From Octopus sinensis (Eukaryota), in the NCBI RefSeq assembly GCF_006345805.1, contig NC_043023.1, positions 9,610,001 to 9,674,000 on the forward strand: a DNA stretch of 64,000 nt, in the 5' to 3' direction. The notes under the pieces were generated by a model, which saw only the letters and a list, made by a program, of their open reading frames with translations, had not been told where the DNA came from and made no database searches. Position numbers and translations under genes: made by a program. Below are positions 10,781 to 63,500 of the stretch, piece after piece (position 1 is the stretch's first letter; each line of letters opens with the position of its first letter).

Positions 10781-11081
10781 GGATACACACACACACACTG
10801 ATTTAGTTATGTCTATTTGCTTAACGATATCACTTCTGAACATTGTCAATCGAAATCTAGAATTTCCCCGGGTTGCCCATTGCCTTACGTTTGCCGAAGC
10901 TAAATGATAGAGACAAGAGAGAGGATGTCACCAATTATAGACCTAATATTTATTGACCAATACTCTAGAAATTATTAACCTGTCTCATAGGAGAAGTATA
11001 TAATTTTCTGCAAAATGAAAATCTATTGGCAGTTGAGCAAAAAGGATGTAGAAAGAAATCAAAGGGAATTGCTATATACAT

Positions 11082-11680: not shown

Positions 11681-12210
11681 GCTATATATAGATAGATAAA
11701 TATAAGAATGAAAGAACAATTTAGCTGGTAGATGGATAGATTGATGGAAGGTTTACGTCAATGTCTCACACAGCTGGCCGTGGGTGTGTTTGAGGACGCT
11801 CGAAATTCATTGAAATATAGACAAGTTTTTGAAAATTCATTCAAATGACGAAAACAATTAGAAAACCAACAGAAAGACTAACATGGCACTTGACATGTAG
11901 AGGAGATCCTGTCGTTGATGTTGGAAAACAAAACACTTAGAGCGTAATTACAAGTGGGACACTGTATTCAGTATGCTTATCGGATACAGCTGCGATTTTA
12001 GAGAATAGTATTATATGAAGAGAAAGAAGAGGCGAGTGTGTGTTATGCGTTTAAAAAGTATATGGATATTGAAAAGATTACATTTGTAGTTATATTTGGA
12101 TCCGACGTTATAGAGGTGAGTCAGTATTTGTTACTTTTCTTTTAGGACTTCACATTTAAATACACACACACACACGCGCGCGCGCATGTGATCCAGTGAT
12201 CTGAATGTTA

Positions 12211-13014: not shown

Positions 13015-13239
13015 TAGATGGTAAATGTTTGTCATTTCCAAATTTATTCCTGTCGATTTTATCCGTTATTTTTGTGCTTTACAGAACCTAGCTGTTCTTT
13101 CTAATGTGTTGAATTCCCTACAAGTGGATTCCTTATGTGTATAAATATACACTATATATCGTTATATATATATATATATATATATTACCCTCCGGCTGCA
13201 CCGCTCCTACCTATTTATTACTGTGGGCTCTACTTTTCT

Positions 13240-14860
13240 ACTTTTGATGAAAAACATATCTTACAATGGCACCGGTAACAAAACACGTGTCACTAAAGAA
13301 TATTTCAGTTGAATAAAGAAAATTTGGACCTGAGAACTCTCTGCATTCAATAAAACAATAAAAGAAAATAAATTTGTTTGCTGTGTCAGTACTCATAAAA
13401 CATTTGGGCTGCTTGATCGGATGCTTGATGAGATCCAAGTCATTGAGGTGAAGACCCGAAAAATACTAACACGCACACATTATTTCCACATAAACAGTAA
13501 TGTAGTCCGCTTATACCTAAAACAGAAAACAAGGTGGCAGACGCTTATTATCGATCCAAAATACCTTTGAATGTCGTATCATATCCTCCAGCAACATATT
13601 TTAAACAACAAATGTCGAAGTGCATCCCTTGACGAAGTTTGTATACATGAGGCTGGTAACATCATAAGACTTGGAAGCCAGCTCCTTAAGCAACATTCTT
13701 CGTCTGATAACCTAGAAACATGTCCAAAGAGGTCGCATGACTCTACCACAACGCATCATCAGATGAAAGGATGAGCCTATATGAGAAGACTGCATGGATA
13801 AGATAACAGAAGGATCCGAGACGATAGTAACATCGATCATCAAAGCAGTTTATCATAGAGCAATAACTGGCTTACTACCTCCCACTTTTAAAGGGTATGT
13901 GTTTGTAATCCAGGAACCGGAAATGTCAACCAAGTACTTGATGCCTAATCGGGATAGAAATGAAATGCTGGAAAAGCAGTAAAATGTGACAACCGATGCA
14001 GATTTTGTAGAGTTAACACTGAAGATATCAGTCACATCATAAGCAATTGTCCAAAACTGTAATCACGGTATTATCTACCGATGATACATGATGCGGTAGC
14101 TAGGACACTCTATAATAAAATCCGTCGGAAGAATAACTCCGAGAACAACGATATAAGAACCCACTGTATAGTAGAAGCCATAACCACTCCGAGTGAAGTC
14201 TGACCGAGTGAATATCTCAATAAAATGTAAGCACAGTAGACCTGATATAATGATTTCGGTTAGAGAAGAGAAACTGTGCACAGTGGTTGAAATTATCTGC
14301 CCAGCGGATGTTAACATAAAGTTGAAGATCAGTGAATAACACCTACATTGAACTATTAAGAAATCTGCTGTTACTTTATCCAGATTAGAAGTTTAGGTTT
14401 ATGCCTATAATTATTGAATCCCTGGTATATCTAACACATTGCCTAAATACAAATTTTGAAAAATTAGGCTTCTCAAAACCAGAAAGGAGAATGCTATTTG
14501 CAAAGACTACAGATCCGATCCATCACTGGAACAGTACAAATCCGTAAAACCTTCCAGAAGTTTATCATTTAAATATGTATGAGCATGTCTATATATGTAA
14601 CTATATGCATGAAGACACATGCATAGAGCAAAACGTACAGATCTTCACAAATACATACATACATACATACAAAAATACCCTGCATTTCGATGTCGAAATT
14701 CCAATGAAGGGGTCTTGAATATAGGTTAGAAGCCTGCTCTTTCTGTATTGGCTAGAAATCTTGAAATAAATCTCAAGCAATGACATAGATACATGATCGC
14801 TGTCTACTCCTTATGCAGAATCTGACCATCTCTTCTACTGTAGATCTATCGTGATACCTG
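13240..14860 (+). mobile_element. Decayed R4/NeSL-type (RLE-bearing) non-LTR retrotransposon, 3' part
   Basis: Broken frames give VKTRKILT..HINSNVVRLYL, CRFCRVNTEDISHIISNCPKL (CCHC), HDAVARTL, RPDIMI..VEIICPAD (restriction-like endonuclease). Confidence 0.75.
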
Positions 14861-14879: not shown

Positions 14880-16390
14880 ATAATGTATTGAAAAGACACC
14901 AACATAACTTGAATATTTAACTTGGACCACAAATAGCTGCAGTTAAGTTCTGATCTTTGTGGATCCTTAAATGTTATTTGAGATCCCCGTTCGATTCACA
15001 TACCTTATGGCATACAGAAGGCATACACAGATCGATTGGTAGAGTTGGTGGGGGTTTGTTTTTCATGGGGCCGCAAATGAGATTTGAACCTTTCCAACAA
15101 TTTGAGGTGATTTTCGCAACAGGTTCATGTTTCATTGGAATACAACGGGCATGGTAAAACAAACTATTTGTAAAGAATCAATTTTCTTTTGTCATTTATA
15201 TGACGCTGGTGCCAAAGGTGTGAGTCCAAGCTACCCTTTTAATTCACAGATGTATTTCTGTGTTCATATTTCCATCATTCTATACAGAGCTTCCGAGATA
15301 GATGAAAGAGTCAAACACCTCAAGTAACTTACCCTTAAGGAAACTTTTAGTGCGGCTGCAAAATAGAACCACACGCAGGTTGATACATCATAACTGTCTT
15401 TTTTTCAGGTTGATGGTGAAACCAAAATCATCAGAAGCTGAGTCAAATGTAGATACAAGAGATTGCAGGCCTGTTTCAGAGTGACTAACTAGATCGCAAT
15501 TGTCGGCATACAAGAGTCTCGTAACGAGTGAAGTAAAAACCTCTGTTTCGAATTTCCGTCTGGTCAGATTAAAAACATTCCCTGTTCTGCGATATTTTAT
15601 GTAAGTAACCTCCTCGGAGTTTTGAAAGTCCTGTGACAGTATGACACCAAAATATATTACAAAATATATTACAAGGTGGCGAGCTGGCAGAAACGTTAGC
15701 ACGCCGGACGAAATGCGTAGCCGCATTCGTCTGTCGTTACGTTCCGAGTTCAAATTCCGCCGAGGTCGACTTTACCTTTCATCCTTTCGGGGTCGATAAA
15801 TTAAGTACCAGTTACACACTGGAGTCGATGTAATCGACTTATTCCCTTTGTCTGTCCTTGTTTGTCCCCTCTGTGTTTAGCCCCTTGTGGGTAGTAAAGA
15901 AATATATTACAAAATGCATCAATGTCTTCTTGCTTTACTCCCTTTTCCACGGCAAAATATTCAGGAAGCCTACCACCAAAATTAACTTAATATGTTGAGG
16001 CAATGCTCTGGTCAGGTTTACAAATTTTTCTGGTCACCCTATTTTCCTTGGACAATATACTTCATTAACATAAGAGTACAATTCCTTAGTATAATTTCTA
16101 TTAGCTGCTTCTTGCGCCCCCTTTGATTTGTCATTCTACCATTCCTGTTTAATTTTCGTTAGAGCAGGCTGTACTTACACTTTCAGCTTTCCGTAAGCTT
16201 CGTTTGAGTAGCGATTCAAGGACTGAGAAAGAGTTGTGTTGCATAAATTTTGTTTTCCTAAAAGCAGATAATGAATTTTTGGTGATTTGTCTAAAAACCT
16301 CTCACTGGAATTACACGGTTTAAATTCTCCTGGAAAACTTGCAGCCTGAAATACTTTAGAAATCTTCCAATAGATAGTTTGGATCAAGAG
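14880..16390 (-). mobile_element. Decayed RTE-clade LINE reverse-transcriptase remnant, interrupted by a SINE
   Basis: YRRTGNVFNLTRR..LLYADNCDLVSHSETGLQSLV..FGFTINLKK and KGVKQ RT motifs. Confidence 0.75.
15674..15903 (+). mobile_element. SINE family A monomer
   Basis: Single body; target-site duplication AATATATTACAA. Confidence 0.92.
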
Positions 16391-17079
16391 TGACTCTTTC
16401 TATAGCGTCATGGAATCTATGCTTATTGCTTGATTATTTGAAATTTGCAACATTTAATTTTTAGGGTACGTTAGAACAAGAATGTCGACTTTTAGGCATT
16501 ATCGAAATGATTTGGTGTACAAGATTTGGTGTACTAAGACTTGGTGTACAAGTAGTACCTGTGCAGGTGAAAAATGTTTAAGTGGGTGTAGAGTGTACTG
16601 CACTACCCCACCTATTAACCCAAGAAGACTTTCACCGTGGTAACATGAGAATTGACAAAACCAGGAACTTCGAAAACCTTAGAAATTATTTTAGAGATTT
16701 TTTTTCTCCTAGGTAGAGTACCAACCAATGTTAAAGACCTTCTACCCGCCCCTGCTCATAGGGTAGGTTATCTTGTGGCAGCCACCCAAACGACGTCCGA
16801 ACAATCCACGGTAAGATTAATTATCATTCCGATGTCCGAGGCGGAGCAGCTCACAAACGCAGGAAAAAATGTAAAGAATATAGAAAAGTAACAGACATAA
16901 AATTTTAAAATATGACGAAAATACTCATTAGTTCCTCTGCCCTTTGACGAGTCGTATTTTTCGCACCGCAAAAATCACCCTACTCACCAAGCCAGCCTGG
17001 TGGAGTTGGGAGTTTAGTCGCCGACGATCCGACCACGCAATAGGTCGTACTAGGTTGCATGTCACTAGTAGCACTCAAG

Positions 17080-17959
<880 letters not shown>

Positions 17960-17960
<1 letters not shown>

Positions 17961-20900
17961 AGATAGATAAGTTTCTTTATTGGCCACACAGGGCTGCACA
18001 CAGATGGGACAAGTTACAAGGTAGAGCTTTTCTTTTGGGGGATGAAGAGAACAAAAAAAACAAAAGAAAAAAAGGGGGTTTGCGTAGGTTTTCGATCAAG
18101 AGGGATCGTAAAAGGGAAGAACAGAACAAAAACAAAAAAAAAGTTTTAAGATAGATATGTTTCTTTATTAGCCACACAGGGCTGCACACAGATAGAACAA
18201 ATTACAAGGTAGAGCTTTTCTTTTGGAGGTAAAAAAAAAAATAAAAATAAAATAAAAAAAAAGGGGGGGTCGATCAAAAGGGATCGTAAAAGGAGAGAAA
18301 GAGGACAAAAAAAGGGGGGGGTTAAAAAAAGGGGGAGAGGAAAAAATTGATCAATAGGGATCGTTATCACAGAAATGTCAATATGAAGTGTAAAGGGGAG
18401 GACAGGTGAGGTTTACCCGTGGAAAGAAAAGCCTACGGAAAAGACCATGGTAACCTCGGTCAATGAAGTCACATGTTATTTTTTTTTTTTTTTTTTTTTG
18501 CAAATAAGCAACTCTCTGTATTAATTTTTACGGTTCATAGAATCATAGTCAAGGTGGCTTCGTCATTCATACGTGCCATCCTTGCTACATTCACCCATCT
18601 TTTTTTAAAACATTCACTAGACAAAACTTGCCTCTCTACTCTCACTTTTTTCTTCAAGTGATACTTGAAGAAGTTGATGAGAGATTGACCAGAGAGGAAA
18701 GTGTTTGTCTCTAATCCTTTCAGACGCGTCCACCAGATACATTCTTTCGCCATAGCCACAAGTATGATAAAAATAGCTCTTCCTTCCCGTTTGAAGGAAG
18801 GAGGCGTGACGATATTAACGATAGACTCGGCTGATAAACCGACACGTCCCACACGTGACAGCAGTCGTTCGACATAAGCCCACAGGTGGGAAATTGCTGG
18901 ACACTGCACGATTGCGTGCAGAGCGGTTTCGTCGCTCTGCCCGCATCTCGGGCAGGTCGGCCCCGTGTTTCTCGAGCCATGCCTATAGAGCTTATCCCGA
19001 ACGGGTAGCGCTTCTCGGTAGCACCGCCAGGCCAGGGATCTCTGGAAGTTGTCCATAGGCTCGGGCCGAAAGTCGTTTGAAACAGGCGGGTCAGGTATTC
19101 CTCGTCGACGCCCAGGTTTGCCCCGAGCTCGTCGTCGTACCTCCCCTCCACTAATCCCCTATAGAATGCTTTGGTTGTGTTGAAGTCACTCAAGGTCGAC
19201 CCAGGACGGCAGAGTTGCTTGAGAGCAACGCGACACTCGCGGTGCCATTCGCCCTTCCTCGGCCTCTTTTTGATCCACGACTGTAGTTCGGTCATGGAGA
19301 CGAGTTGCGGGAATGCGTGCCTCACAAACGGCGACCACACCTGTTCACCGTCGTCTACATAGAGCCGGAGATGTCGCAGTCTCAGCGCGTGTCTGCGCAT
19401 CATCAACCACGGCATGCCCAGCCCTCCTTTTAACGGGTGTTGACAGCAAATGGATCGCCTGACCATCGGGACGCATCCTTTCCACAAGAAGCGGAAGAGG
19501 ATGCGTTCTAGTTTGGTGATGGTAGGGTCGGGACAAGGTACGACGGTCAGGCGGTAGTAGATGATGGACGCGATGTACGCGTTCACCACCTCCGCCCGAC
19601 CTTTTAGGGACAGTTTCCTCTCGGCCCATTGCTGGGCGAGAGTGACCACCCTACTCGTTATCTCGTTCCAGTTCTTCTCCATTTGGAGGTCCGGACCGAA
19701 CCAGACCCCGAGCAACTCAACCGGGCCGTCTGTCCAGCGTCCCACGACGGAGGTACTGGTGGACGGCATGGGCTTGCTTCTCCAGGTGCCGAGCCGCAAG
19801 CCCACTGACTTTTCCCGGTTGATTTTTGCTCCTGTCACCGCTTCGTAGTCTTTCAGTGTCTCGCCGACCCGCTCGATGTGCTCGTGGCTTGACACTATGA
19901 CGGTGACGTCGTCCGCGTATGCAGACACGCTCGTCCCGCATCCTAATTCTCGCGGGATGCCCCTCAGAGTCGCCAGCTTCCGCAGTAGTGGCTCAAGAGT
20001 CAATACGTATAGAAGCGCCGAGAGGGGGCATCCCTGACGGACCGAACGTGCAATGTCGAAGGGTCTCGATAGATGTCCATTTACGCGAATTACCGAACGG
20101 ATGCCTCTGTACAAGGCAGCTATCCAGCCGCGGAAGACGGGACCGAAACCAGCCGCTCTCAGGACTGCCTCCAAGTATCGATGGTCTACCCTATCAAAGG
20201 CTTTCGATTGATCCAAGTTGATCAGGGCCCCACCCATGCCAGGTTCGTTAACTACCCTGTCTATGATGTAGCGCATCAGATGGAGGTTGTCATGGATGTT
20301 CCGGCCCGGCACGGCGCACGTTTGTGCGTTGTCGACCAGTTTCTCCATGACAAGCGCCAACCTCTTGGCTAACACCTTTGTCAAAATTTTCAGGTCTGAA
20401 TTGAGCAGAGTGATTGGCCTAAAGTTATCTATAATGTTTCCCTTGTTTGGATCTTTCTTCAGCAGAGTTACAGCTCCTCGACTCACAAAACCGGGTATGC
20501 TCCCGTTTTGCTGCCAGTTGTAGTATACCGCTGCCAAGACGTCTCCAAACAAGTCTGGCATACAATAGTAAAATTCGTAGGGTAGACCATCCAAACCCGG
20601 TGATTTGTCCCTCGAGCATTCTGCCATCGCTTCCCGCACTTCCGCCGCCGTGATGGCACCTTCGCAGCACCCTGCCTTTCTTGTCGAGAGTCGTGGCAGG
20701 CTATGTAGGTAGGCACTGAAGTCTACCCTACGTTCTTGCCCTCCACTCGTCCCGAACAGTCGGGCAAAATGCTGCTGAAAGGCCTCACACATTTTACTTG
20801 GCTCGAGCAATTCGCGCCCCTGTTCATCTACCAGTGACCGAATGGTGGCTTTGTTGCCCTGTTGCGCCTCTGCCACCCGGGCCTCTCTCGCGGCTCCAAC

Positions 20901-21990
20901 ACCTTCGTTCCTTAGAGCACGCATCCTAGCTCTGACAGCACATCCTTCGTGTTTGGCGTTGAAGTGTTGGTCGAGGGCCAACCTCGCCGCCAAAACGTCG
21001 GATGCGATGCCGCTTCTAATTGCCTCTTCTAGCTTCTTAACTAGCTCACCCTCTACTCTATTTCTATCTATGGCTAGTGCTTTGCTGTACCTAATCGCTT
21101 CTGCTTTTACTGCTCTCTTGAGGGCAAACCACCATTTGTTGTTGATGATGGCTCCCGTCAAAGCCCTCTTTACTAGTGTGCTAATCCGGTCTCTGAAAAC
21201 TTGTCTGGACGGGAATGATGCGTTCAGTTTCCAGTACCCAGGACCCTGTCTATGTGCCTTATCTAAGTCTAGCGTACACGTCACCAATTTGTGATCCGTG
21301 TAGCTGACTGTGTGGAATTGTGGACATCCTAAGTTATCCTTGTCTACTGTCCTACACAGTATCCTATCTAGATACGATCTCGACGACCCACTGCGGTTGC
21401 TCCATGTCCACGTTGGTGCATTTGGGTGGTCGAGTCGGTACCTGTCAGACAGTTGGAATCGTCTGAGCAGGTCTCTGAGGCATTTGCATCCCCTTCTGTT
21501 TCTGTCTCTACCCACGTAGTCTACATGCGTGTCCAAGGTAGCATTCCAATCCCCCACTAAGAGTAAAGGACGAGACGTTCCCAAGAATACTTCTAGACGT
21601 CGAAAGAAATCCGCCCGACCTGTTAAGGGCGGTGCGTAGACTGATACGAGTCGAAAAGCGCACCCATTGCTGCCGTCAACATCCGGGTCTACGAATATCG
21701 TCTTGACTTCGAGATCCAGGCTCTTGTGAAAAAGTACCGCGGTGCCACTACCGCCCATCCTCGGCAGACAGGGAGCGAAATAAATGTTAAACTGTCCGCC
21801 AAACATGGACTTTAGGGCCCGTGGCTCGTGGAGTCTGGTCTCACTTATGGCTATGATTCCCAAATCATGTGACTTGATGTCATTTAGGAGGTATCCTTGT
21901 TTCCAAGGAGACCCCAAGCCACGCGCATTCACACAACCAATCTTGACCATGATTCTATTGGGGTGTGTGCTTTAAAACACACAAATGAAA
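17960..21990 (-). mobile_element. Tx1/L1-clade LINE, nearly intact ORF2, no ORF1 seen, tandemly duplicated 3' end
   Basis: ORF2 at 21950-18535 followed by a 3' UTR ending ...GTGTGGCCAATAAAGAAAC at a GATA tract. Confidence 0.9.
18535..21950 (-). CDS. LINE ORF2: AP endonuclease, reverse transcriptase and C-terminal zinc-binding (zf-RVT-like) domain; single frameshift near 19060
   Basis: CVNARGL, LVGDWN, SYLDRI, SYTDHK (APE); KSPGLDG, LDQSKAFDRVDH, RQGCPLS, AYADDV (RT); CPRC..ETALHAIVQC in the shifted frame. Confidence 0.9.
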
Positions 21991-22538: not shown

Positions 22539-22800
22539 CACAATATAAATAAAATGGAAGGATATATAATTTATGAAACGCAGTTGAACTAAACTATAAT
22601 TTATATATATTTTTGATACTTTATCATGTGTGTGTATCTGTGTGTGTGTATCTGTGCATGGGTGTATGTTTGTGTGTGTATGTGTGTGTAATAGGTCTTA
22701 AGTTTTTATTTGACATTTTCACTTAATCATTATCATTAAAGTCCTAATCTATTATTATATTCTTCTCATTGGCTTATCGAGATTCAGTTTTATAATAACT

Positions 22801-23513
22801 TTGGATCTTTTCCTTTTGAACGGAAGTTTTCAACACAATTTCTAGTTAACTAAGCACTTTAAAACTTCGTATACTGGGTAGAATGTGTCAAAATAAAACA
22901 TTTTTCGGATCTTTTCCTTTTGAACGGCAGTTTTCAACACAATTTCTAGTTAACTAAACACTTTTAAACTTCGTATACTGGTAGAATGTGTCAAAATAAA
23001 ACATTTTTTGGATCTTTTCATTTTGAACGGCTGTTTTCAACACAATTTCTAGTTAACTATACATTTTTAAACTTCGTATACTGGGTAGAATGTGTCAAAA
23101 TAAAACATTTTTCGGATCTTTTCCTTTTGAACGGCAGTTTTCAACACAATTTCTAGTTAACTAAACACTTTTAAACTTCGTATACTGGTAGAATGTGTCA
23201 AAATAAAACATTTTCTGGATCTTTTCCTTTTGAACGGCAGTTTTCAACACAATTTATTGTTAACTAAACACTTTTAAACTTCGTATACTGGGTAGAATGT
23301 GTCAAAATAAAACATTTTTCGGATCTTTTCCTTTTGAACGGCAGTTTTCAACACAATTTCTAGTTAACTAAACACTTTTAAACTTCGTATACTGGTAGAA
23401 TGTGTCAAAATAAAACATTTTTTGGATCTTTTCATTTTGAACGGCAGTTTTCAACACAATTTCTAGTTAACAAGAAATTGTGTTGAAAACTGCCGTCCAA
23501 AAGGAAAAGATCC
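22801..23513. repeat. Tandem array of alternating 104/103-bp units ending in an inverted copy (hairpin)
   Basis: GGATCT at 22803, 22907, 23010, 23114, 23217, 23321 and 23424; 23472-23513 is the reverse complement of the last unit start. Confidence 0.92.
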
Positions 23514-23684
23514 ATAACTTTAATTATGACATTGAAAGCAAACGAATTCAAGGATAAATTCGTCCTACGAAACAGGGAACAACCTTCGTTCTTCAAAAGA
23601 ATCTGCAATATGAATGAAATAATATTGAAGTGTCTGATATTTCGTATTTTTCTTTATTTTACAGATTAATCTACGCCAGAAAAT

Positions 23685-62191
<38,507 letters not shown>

Positions 62192-62338
62192 GTAAGTTCG
62201 ATCAGTGTTACTGATACTATTCCTTGTCTGCATGTTTTTACATAACTAAAAATTTACCATACTTTGCTTCCGTCACTTTGCTCTTCCCTATCTCACACAC
62301 GAACATTCACAAACGCACTCAGACTTATATATTAATAG

Positions 62339-62477
<139 letters not shown>

Positions 62478-62759
62478 GTATATATATATATAATTAAAGA
62501 AAACAGAAAATGGAGAACTACTGATGAACAACAATTGACTTTCATCAATTATTATTTATAAATTTAATTTAAATAGACTGTATCCCGTGTAACAGCTGTT
62601 TCTGCTTCCAATCTTCTTGTGTGGTCTTGCCAATGATATACAAAAATATGTAGACTATTAAGCATATTTGGTAATAAAACGATATGAAACATCAGAGTGA
62701 AGAATAAATAAAGAAGAGGAGCATAGAGAAGAAAAAGGAAAAATATGGTTGTCATCACA

Positions 62760-63500
62760 CCAATTTGCTTGTGTGCCTCTTAACAGCGGTTTGATCAGAC
62801 CACGTCTTTACTATTTGTAGGCCGGGATTACCACAGAGCTCCCAAAAGATCCTTCTTGCCACATTGTCATGGCAACGTTTGTATTCGCTTTGCACAATTT
62901 CGGGCATTCTCTAACGATGTGTTCTACCGTTTTACCCCTCTCACAACACATTCTGCACTTTTCGCTACCAGCAGTGTTGACAATACTACTGATAAACAAG
63001 CGTTTATCAGATGCGCATATTAACGATTCTGTCTCTGTCTTCAGGTTACTCAACCACATACATTGTCATCGATCCTCTCTATCTGCTCTGGCGTTCACAT
63101 CTCTTGCAAACTAACCGTACATTTTTTTGTTCAGTTCTTGTGTAATTTTCTCTTAGTTACACATTTTCAGTTTTTAAGTCGCCGTCCGTTTTTGGGGAGT
63201 GGCTCCACAGCATTTTTTATATACCTCACTAGGCTATTTTCCCCTGCTTCGATACAGTTCTGGCAACTAATTAAACTTCTCCAACCCTTTGTTCTTTACA
63301 AGTACAGTCAATCGATGTCACTCTTAAAGTGGAAGGCTCCATGTACAGTCAACAGGTTTCTGATCTTGGTATCCATTTTATTCATTTCCAGCATTAGACG
63401 TTTTATAATTCCCGCTCCATACCGAAGTGATGCTATCGTCCATGTATTAACTGATTGCATTTTATTCCATCCAGTCTCGACGCTCTAACCACTGAGCATG
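62760..63500 (-). mobile_element. Decayed R4/Dong-like LINE remnant
   Basis: EMNKMDTKIRNLLTVHGAFHFKSDID and WLSNLKTETESLICA..CRMC..TVEHIVREC in broken frames. Confidence 0.7.

Follow-up and report, generated by a model that had tools for sequence, protein, structure and literature searches.

Fourteen single-LRR exons in an octopus genome very probably belong to the 5' third of a lineage-specific adhesion GPCR gene

Introduction

What kind of gene places one signal-peptide exon in front of a long row of very small exons, each encoding a single leucine-rich repeat (LRR)? We met this question in a 64,000-nucleotide stretch of Octopus sinensis DNA (hereafter the window), which is AT-rich animal DNA with dense microsatellites, SINE-like repeats, and LINE fragments. 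The initial annotation, made from the letters alone, described a hidden array of interchangeable LRR micro-exons and considered it a candidate for an undescribed recognition or diversification system, with a plain constitutively spliced receptor as the fallback.

Octopuses possess a lineage-specific expansion of adhesion G protein-coupled receptors (GPCRs), some members of which carry LRRs (Ritschard et al. 2019; PMC6408891). The expanded genes are co-localised and bear marks of positive selection, and their expression is found mainly in the axial nerve cord, suckers, and skin (PMC6408891). Here, we argue that the 15 exons in the window very probably make up the 5' third of one such octopus-lineage gene, a conventionally spliced adhesion GPCR with an LRR ectodomain, whose 3' part we infer from orthologues.

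Results

One leader exon is followed by fourteen single-LRR exons

In a splice-aware scan of the window, we kept every AG...GT interval 66-81 nt long whose phase-2 frame is open and starts with an xLxxNxI motif. On the + strand, the array consists of one leader exon and exactly 14 single-LRR exons, the latter spread over 26023-62191 (Table 1). Thirteen of the 14 LRR exons are 72 nt long and one is 66 nt (29343-29408); all of them are open and in phase 2-2. Every one is preceded by a polypyrimidine tract and AG, and the donor is GTAAGT in 13 cases and GTAAGA in the remaining one. The coding part of the leader measures 188 nt (62 codons plus 2 nt), hence the intron that follows it is also in phase 2. 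Each LRR exon encodes one repeat of the 24-residue 'typical' kind (LxxLxLxxNxIxxIxxxxFxxLxxL). Splicing the 15 exons in silico produced an open peptide of 396 aa, with a signal peptide, a short LRRNT, and 14 LRRs, and this joined peptide matched Pfam LRR_8 at E = 5e-146.

A nucleotide profile of the LRR exon and its flanks, run over both strands of the window with nhmmer --max, recovered the same 14 exons at E <= 1e-12 and no others below E = 0.4. Neither regular expressions nor tblastn nor nhmmer --max found extra or relic LRR exons in the large introns or on the minus strand of the window. Likewise, a search of the window for 7TM or Cys-rich exons, including any from an upstream neighbour gene, found none. 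The initial description of a leader plus one-LRR exons, all in phase 2-2, stop-free, and with strong splice sites, was therefore confirmed, and its count of at least 14 becomes exactly 14 within the window.

The array extends over 36 kb in the window and 10 kb in O. bimaculoides, owing to transposable-element and microsatellite insertions in the window introns. It does not end at 62191, as the orthologues have one further LRR exon and an LRRCT exon downstream.

Table 1. Positions of the array exons and of the recent tandem duplication in the window, with counterparts at the orthologous O. bimaculoides locus (L003)
Feature	Window position	Strand	Description	O. bimaculoides counterpart (L003) and identity
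Leader exon	23665..23872	+	Acceptor 23665, ATG 23685, phase-2 donor after 23872; signal peptide MPSQRHQVMLTFVLILYMSLSFETRA, reduced LRRNT with 2 Cys	
LRR1 exon	26023..26094	+	72 nt, phase 2-2	10811-10882, 64/72 nt
LRR2 exon	29343..29408	+	66 nt, 22-residue repeat, phase 2-2	12044-12109, 61/66 nt
LRR3 exon	47197..47268	+	72 nt, after a transposable-element-filled 17.8-kb intron	13049-13120, 65/72 nt
LRR4 exon	52111..52182	+	72 nt; orthologue skipped in O. bimaculoides X2	14694-14765, 66/72 nt
LRR5 exon	54146..54217	+	72 nt	16139-16210, 69/72 nt
LRR6 exon	54889..54960	+	72 nt	16698-16769, 64/72 nt
LRR7 exon	56156..56227	+	72 nt, first of the old 219-nt pair (56115-56531)	17414-17485, 66/72 nt
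LRR8 exon	56375..56446	+	72 nt, second of the 219-nt pair	17633-17704, 66/72 nt
LRR9 exon	57413..57484	+	72 nt; missing from 3/3 annotated O. vulgaris isoforms	18031-18102, 67/72 nt
LRR10 exon	58516..58587	+	72 nt, 'NNILNIKE' type, recent duplication copy 1; 67/72 nt to exon 60447	18875-18946, 66/72 nt
LRR11 exon	59108..59179	+	72 nt, recent duplication copy 1; 72/72 nt to exon 60655	19086-19157, 62/72 nt
LRR12' exon	60447..60518	+	72 nt, 'NNITYIEE' type, LRR10 duplicate in copy 2	Top match LRR10, 65/72 nt
LRR13' exon	60655..60726	+	72 nt, LRR11 duplicate in copy 2	Top match LRR11, 62/72 nt
LRR14 exon	62120..62191	+	72 nt, last coding exon within the window; orthologous to O. bimaculoides LRR13	19966-20037, 60/72 nt
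Recent tandem duplication, copy 1 (LRR10 + LRR11)	58160..59698	+	~390-bp SINE-like insertion at 58622-59012	
Recent tandem duplication, copy 2 (LRR12' + LRR13')	60090..61245	+	96.3% and 98.8% identical to copy 1	

Orthologues continue into GAIN, GPS, and 7TM regions

The joined peptide matches O. bimaculoides proteins that are named variously chaoptin, IGFALS, and slit homolog. When we searched for full-length relatives with a 1063-aa composite query, the best match was an O. vulgaris 'adhesion G-protein coupled receptor G6-like' protein. For the O. vulgaris orthologue, three isoforms are annotated (CAI9743540 to CAI9743542; 1116, 1161, and 1080 aa, respectively), and Iso-Seq, RNA-seq, and PASA all went into that annotation (PMC10700109). 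The first 252 residues of CAI9743541.1 (1161 aa), which cover the leader and LRR1-8, are identical to the window peptide at 249 positions (98.8%); for the leader exon peptide by itself, the figure is 61 of 62 aa. Such matches put the window within the O. vulgaris species group, and the few residue differences set it apart from the O. vulgaris reference assembly. Another O. vulgaris isoform (P0131) uses the leader exon from the 23665 acceptor in a different frame.

The CAI9743541.1 gene spans 141 kb. After LRR14, its product has a further LRR and then an LRRCT (CGCHL…), which are followed by the Cys-rich module, the GAIN domain, the GPS, and a 7tm_2 domain. The GPS lies at residues 719-763 (E = 7.3e-17) and reads CSCNHLTSFA, with the cleavage motif CSCNHL↓T. 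The 7tm_2 domain occupies residues 783-1017 (E = 1.1e-39), and there is no 7tm_1 match in this protein. In a comparison of its GAIN-7TM region with solved structures, ADGRG6 was closest (3.7e-61), ADGRG2 came next (4.6e-54), and ADGRL3 followed.

The O. bimaculoides orthologue is the gene of XP_014776846.2 / XP_052833918-21, for which RefSeq lists four isoforms, X1-X4. At this locus (L003), ~24 kb of a single strand holds, in collinear order, the leader, 14 LRR, LRRCT, two Cys-rich, GAIN, GPS, and 7TM exons, with the GPS exon at 28863-29006. The RefSeq model ends at 617 aa, before an assembly gap (L003 25871-26324), and the GAIN, GPS, and 7TM exons lie beyond the gap on the same strand. The LRR-only RefSeq names are thus misleading, because the model stops just short of the gap. 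We rejected the identities that RefSeq gives to the O. bimaculoides isoforms and to neighbouring paralogues (chaoptin, IGFALS, Slit, and decorin) on account of these GAIN, GPS, and 7TM exons after the gap and of a Pfam result with no EGF or LamG domain. Proteins of those names are LRR-only and either secreted or GPI-anchored or, in the case of Slit, combine four LRR blocks with EGF, LamG, and CTCK.

Adhesion GPCRs are recognised by a GAIN domain that ends in a GPS autoproteolysis motif (C-x-C-x-HL↓T/S), a 7tm_2 domain, and a long ectodomain of adhesion-type modules behind a signal peptide. The first two are present in the orthologues and would lie beyond the end of the window. The third is provided by the window itself, which encodes 14 LRRs after an LRRNT remnant and a leader whose core is hydrophobic.

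Related genes lie in tandem nearby. In O. bimaculoides, a paralogue upstream ends with a 7TM exon (L003 380-784) that sits 9 kb before the leader, so the genes form a head-to-tail array. The O. vulgaris orthologue has a 7tm_2 gene 5 kb upstream, and in O. bimaculoides a GPS/7tm_2 gene comes after the paralogue P0059 on one chromosome. Close full-length relatives were all Octopus proteins, and a query covering LRR15 to GAIN retrieved Octopus proteins only.

A second O. vulgaris locus (L002, the locus of P0130) was considered as the orthologous locus and rejected as a partial paralogous copy. Only window positions 61303-63477 are collinear with it (93-97%), and its peptides differ from CAI9743541.1. 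Moreover, the 35 kb that precede its exon 14 are devoid of LRR exons, and its second Cys-rich exon is missing. The LRR14 peptide of the window is identical to that of the corresponding L002 exon. This paralogous copy also displays the downstream GPS/7TM layout, with its GPS exon at 60999-61148.

The proposal of an LRR receptor locus is borne out by these annotated orthologues, and of the downstream signals that were to be looked for, an LRRCT and a 7TM domain were found in them. The words 'hidden' and 'undescribed' are not supported: the annotation gives the orthologues ordinary multi-exon mRNAs, with 12-15 LRRs in genomic order, and the family has been published (PMC6408891). Both the gene and the family it belongs to were known before, and no new kind of system is needed.

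A Cys-rich module separates LRRCT from GAIN

Outside the window, between the LRRCT and the GAIN domain, the orthologous proteins carry a Cys-rich module with the pattern LQCxxC…CCxxxxCN. In Pfam, this module gave sub-threshold matches only. We compared a profile built from ten octopus copies with PDB sequences, and every match at E <= 10 was a three-finger protein: LYPD1, which aligned from end to end (E = 0.014), along with LYPD6, SLURP1, and an activin receptor ectodomain. AlphaFold2 modelling of the LRRCT plus Cys-rich region (P0126 and 11 relatives) returned a mean pLDDT of 42. Given the weak but consistent profile-versus-PDB result and the cysteine pattern, the module is likely to be a Ly6/uPAR-type domain.

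Exon identity and order are conserved between species while exposed residues change

For every window exon, the positional orthologue is the closest of all O. bimaculoides LRR exons (60-69 of 72 nt; 61 of 66 nt for LRR2), whereas the best pair of non-duplicated paralogous exons in the window agrees at 58 of 72 nt. Intron blocks beside each exon are also collinear between the window and O. bimaculoides. The two lineages split ~34 My ago (PMC10700109). That the positional orthologue is always the closest exon indicates that exon identity and order have been stable for ~34 My, which argues against conversion or shuffling. The claim that the exons are interchangeable, or subject to conversion, does not hold up against these values.

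Across 12 orthologous exon pairs, dN/dS is 0.66 (dS = 0.144, dN = 0.095). Between species, no change falls in the L, N, I, and F scaffold columns, and replacements cluster at exposed positions. On these substitution patterns, the LRR surface is a fast-evolving yet constrained surface, presumably one that binds a ligand. Cysteines have been lost elsewhere in the ectodomain: the first and third of the four LRRNT cysteines are gone in the window/O. vulgaris lineage, and 3 of the 12 cysteines of the Cys-rich module are gone in the vulgaris lineage. These losses could reflect relaxed constraint. The LRRNT disulfides we take to be paired 1-3/2-4, in which case loss of the first and third cysteines would remove one disulfide.

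Duplications of two ages have altered the number of repeats

The exon-plus-intron modules of LRR7 and LRR8 are 79% identical and make up a 219-nt tandem pair. Because the same 219-nt spacing is found in O. bimaculoides, this pair predates the species split. A second, two-exon duplication (LRR10 + LRR11 to LRR12' + LRR13') is not seen in O. bimaculoides, where both window copies map to a single segment (L003 18331-19396). A SINE-like element of ~390 bp is present in copy 1 only, and the corresponding O. bimaculoides site is free of any insertion. We estimate the age of this duplication at a few million years, based on a divergence of 1-4% between the copies as against an interspecies intron divergence of ~15%. 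The nested duplications of different ages reported initially are thus real (Table 1 gives the identities of the younger unit).

A counterpart of O. bimaculoides LRR12 (L003 19605-19676) was sought in the window, and none was found there. The number of single-LRR exons before LRR15 is 14 in the window genome, 13 in O. bimaculoides, and 12 in O. vulgaris mRNAs. The O. vulgaris mRNAs have the repeat order LRR1-8, 'ITY' type, 'Y' type, 'ITY' type, LRR14, with no LRR9, and the window order after LRR8 is 9, ILN, Y, ITY, Y, 14. The former cannot be derived from the latter by skipping alone, so splicing, genomic copy number, or both differ at this point between close relatives. A fixed exon number across species is not what we found, and every window exon shows one-to-one positional orthology. 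The notion of an actively expanding locus survives in part: there is one lineage-specific two-exon duplication and one exon present in one species only, but exon order is otherwise stable.

Annotated splice variants lack single LRR exons

Orthologue mRNAs from the two species contain 12-15 LRR exons in series. In O. bimaculoides, isoform X1 (617 aa) is the full-length-array form; X2 lacks LRR4, X3 lacks LRR10, and X4 lacks LRR12, a loss of 24 residues in each case. With all LRR exons symmetric in phase 2, skipping any of them leaves the reading frame intact, as had been anticipated from the one-LRR-per-exon layout. Strictly constitutive splicing of the LRR exons is contradicted by these three exon-skipping isoforms. 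In-frame skips evade nonsense-mediated decay, and hence low-level splicing noise would look just like the annotated single-exon skips. Our best reading is the fallback of the initial annotation, a plain constitutively spliced receptor, with minor cassette-exon isoforms added. The prediction that variants arise by exon skipping was accurate as far as X2, X3, and X4 go, each without one LRR exon, but it does not extend to a diversification system.

Discussion

Comparison with known receptors

The gene resembles the octopus adhesion-GPCR expansion ('group 3'; PMC6408891) in the LRR, GPS, and 7tm_2 content of its orthologue, in its tandem, co-localised paralogues, and in its fast protein evolution, and we regard it as a putative member of that group. 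Vertebrate ADGRG6 (GPR126) and ADGRG2 offer the closest solved GAIN-7TM regions and share the GPS autoproteolysis motif. The ectodomain of ADGRG6 is of the CUB-PTX-SEA type. In contrast, the octopus ectodomain consists of ~15 LRRs, an LRRCT, and the putative Ly6/uPAR-like module. In ADGRA2 and ADGRA3, only ~4 LRRs are present, and Ig and hormone-receptor domains come after them. These two vertebrate receptors (GPR124 and GPR125) also place an N-terminal LRR block and an LRRCT before the GAIN-7TM region (noted as well in PMC6408891). The octopus 7TM, however, is nearest to the G subfamily, with ADGRA not among the PDB matches, and the octopus LRR block was probably acquired independently of ADGRA.

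LGR4-6 and the glycoprotein-hormone and relaxin receptors are encoded with one LRR per ~72-nt exon and same-phase introns, and in-frame exon-skipped isoforms of them are known. They are class A receptors with a rhodopsin-type 7TM (7tm_1) behind a hinge region, and they have no GAIN or GPS. The octopus locus has the same one-LRR-per-exon, same-phase-intron layout, but its orthologue carries a GPS and 7tm_2 rather than 7tm_1, and the LGR-type system that had been drawn on as a precedent is set aside on that ground. Further afield, LRR exonic modularity is associated with in-frame alternative splicing in human NLRP3 and other NLRs (PMC6642158), and LRR exons are shuffled in brown-alga ROCO/LRR genes (PMC3341825, PMC11378527). 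As in those genes, a repeat-per-exon layout allows in-frame loss, gain, and duplication, and isoforms that skip a single LRR exist. Yet those are other, cytosolic families, and in NLRP3 one specific exon is skipped with a demonstrated functional consequence, whereas the octopus locus is known from sequence.

Alternative explanations

Could the LRR exons be cassettes under regulated combinatorial splicing, joined in tissue- or cell-specific combinations to yield an ectodomain repertoire for recognition diversity? The layout would permit it, since all 14 exons are in phase 2-2 and multiples of 3 nt, so that any subset is in frame. Three O. bimaculoides isoforms each skip a different exon, and LRR9 is missing from the O. 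vulgaris models. Modular LRR exons are also an accepted prerequisite for functional alternative splicing, for example in NLRP3 (PMC6642158), and the family's sites of expression include the nervous tissue of the arm and the suckers (PMC6408891). We nevertheless consider this unlikely. The annotated variants differ from the full form by a single exon, and the full form exists as X1; splice sites are near consensus throughout, as is typical of constitutive micro-exons; and the retention of per-exon sequence identity and position for ~34 My fits a fixed solenoid better. Some low-level noise is in any case to be expected in an annotation when in-frame skips escape nonsense-mediated decay. A different possibility is that the array is a relic in an eroding tandem family, that is, a decaying or recently disabled copy in which duplicated exons are functionally meaningless. 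A dN/dS of 0.66 is fairly high, 2 of 4 LRRNT and 3 of 12 Cys-rich cysteines are gone in the window/O. vulgaris lineage, the partial paralogue L002 in O. vulgaris is without its second Cys-rich exon, and protein searches returned no annotated protein from the window's own genome. Set against these points are 15 of 15 open exons with intact splice sites, scaffold residues that are invariant across species, and an O. vulgaris orthologue with three transcript-supported full-length isoforms in which GPS and 7TM are intact; moreover, the lost first and third LRRNT cysteines would amount to a single disulfide under the 1-3/2-4 pairing assumed above. Decay is, in our judgement, very improbable.

Many LRR modules behind a single leader exon also bear a superficial resemblance to lamprey VLR genes, in which splice-site-free cassettes flanking an incomplete germline gene are copied into it somatically and in variable order. 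Somatic DNA-level assembly of this style has almost no probability here. Each octopus module has its own canonical acceptor and donor (AG/GTAAGT-type sites), all modules share a single orientation, no spare or relic cassettes occur on either strand, germline order equals mRNA order in the orthologues of two species, and the orthologous germline gene is complete; the VLR-type system that the initial annotation had invoked falls with these observations. In insect Dscam1, one exon is chosen per cluster, whereas 12-15 octopus LRR exons stand in series in every annotated orthologue mRNA. The likeness to VLR and Dscam1 goes as far as having many similar modules in one locus.

A model for the receptor and its changing ectodomain

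In a conventionally spliced adhesion GPCR, as we read this gene, the LRRs would stack into a curved solenoid, as is known for LRR proteins, and would form the ligand-binding tip of the receptor in the distal ectodomain. Ligand binding or a mechanical pull might then be relayed through the GAIN/GPS tethered agonist to the 7TM, in the manner usual for adhesion GPCRs. Unequal crossing-over between homologous exon-plus-intron modules may let the number of repeats drift, and it would account for the young two-exon duplication and for the gain or loss of LRR12. Occasional skipping of phase-2-symmetric exons would generate in-frame minor isoforms that are one repeat shorter. Meanwhile, exposed LRR positions would evolve fast, with scaffold residues and exon order being kept.

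A stronger version, in which LRR-exon skipping, together with the copy-number differences of the young unit, is under cell-type-specific regulation in the suckers and in the nervous system of the arm, appears distinctly unlikely from the sequences at hand. If it were true, each LRR adhesion GPCR would be a set of ectodomain-length variants with differing binding surfaces, and octopuses would have a splicing-based recognition code alongside their expanded protocadherins.

Implications for the octopus receptor family

Several points follow for this family. Several octopus entries named chaoptin, IGFALS, slit, or decorin-like in RefSeq are truncated models of adhesion GPCRs. In octopus receptors of this type, the LRRCT and the GAIN domain are likely to be separated by a Ly6/uPAR-like module. 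The repeat-per-exon layout lets a lineage-specific receptor family alter its ectodomain, through tandem exon gain, a species-specific repeat, and isoforms that skip a single repeat, and meanwhile each repeat holds its position for tens of millions of years. With its expression in the arm nerve cord and suckers, this gene family is a place to ask whether the choice of LRR exons is regulated.

Cysteine-rich module and annotation of the O. bimaculoides models

Between the LRRCT and GAIN regions, the orthologues of the window gene carry a Cys-rich module (see table). A PDB profile search with this module matched solely Ly6/uPAR-type three-finger proteins (LYPD1, E = 0.014), and a downstream query running from LRR15 to GAIN, module included, matched only Octopus proteins. 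Relative to O. bimaculoides, the lineage of the window and O. vulgaris has lost 3 of the 12 module cysteines (residues ~430-520 of P0249, the O. vulgaris orthologue) and 2 of the 4 LRRNT cysteines encoded by the leader exon (23685-23872; replaced by W and R).

In O. bimaculoides, RefSeq gives the names chaoptin, IGFALS, slit homolog, or decorin-like to several proteins whose models are truncated LRR adhesion GPCRs. The models concerned are P0001, P0251-P0253, P0059, and presumably P0003. On the same strand, 3' of the orthologue and P0059 models, lie GAIN/GPS/7TM exons or a GPS/7tm_2 gene.

Repeats, transposable elements, and a partial paralogue

The introns are full of two abundant repeat families, found at many window sites and present at ~90% identity in the O. 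bimaculoides and O. vulgaris loci as well. Because of these families and kb-long microsatellites, the array spans 36 kb in the window as against 10 kb in O. bimaculoides. A 103/104-bp satellite (22800-23471; 6.5 copies, 94% identical) stops ~190 bp 5' of the leader-exon acceptor.

Locations of the module, repeats, and partial copy
Feature	Location	Strand	Remarks
Cys-rich module, ~90 residues, LQCxxC…CCxxxxCN	P0252 (longest O. bimaculoides isoform) residues ~424-517; L003 (O. bimaculoides locus) 23562-24926		outside window
LINE ORF2, 1076 aa uninterrupted, endonuclease and reverse transcriptase	window 18723-21950	-	upstream of gene
LINE fragment, 5'-truncated, RVT_1 and zf-RVT	window 49528-51188	+	inside LRR3-LRR4 intron
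Repeats of ~380-420 bp	window 26231-26611, 34533-34920, 37718-38102, 47316-47734, 47939-48332, 55006-55416, 56931-57315, 58616-59015		example sites
kb-long microsatellite	window 52687-53749		example
L002 (partial copy)	O. vulgaris OX597842.1 20722754-20800964		reversed

L002 is a paralogous partial copy of the 3' part of the gene, from exon 14 through the 7TM, and is 93-97% identical to window 61303-63477. It lacks the second Cys-rich exon, and no LRR exons occur in the 35 kb upstream of its exon 14. The annotation there gives a hypothetical protein of 303 aa (P0130), whose first exon is transposon-like.

Repeat order and copy number across species

An LRR1 exon occurs twice in the O. bimaculoides locus (L003 6695-6766 and 10811-10882). 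Both encode the same peptide and lie 4.1 kb apart with assembly gaps between them, and the doubling is either a true exon duplication or an assembly artefact.

Against window 57413-61245, where LRR9, ILN, Y, ITY, and Y stand between LRR8 and LRR14 (ILN, ITY, and Y being repeat types of the duplicated region), O. vulgaris mRNAs (P0249) read LRR8, ITY, Y, ITY, LRR14, and LRR9 is missing from them. Exon skipping from the window order cannot yield this arrangement. Very close genomes thus appear to diverge, in copy number or in sequence, within the duplicated region.
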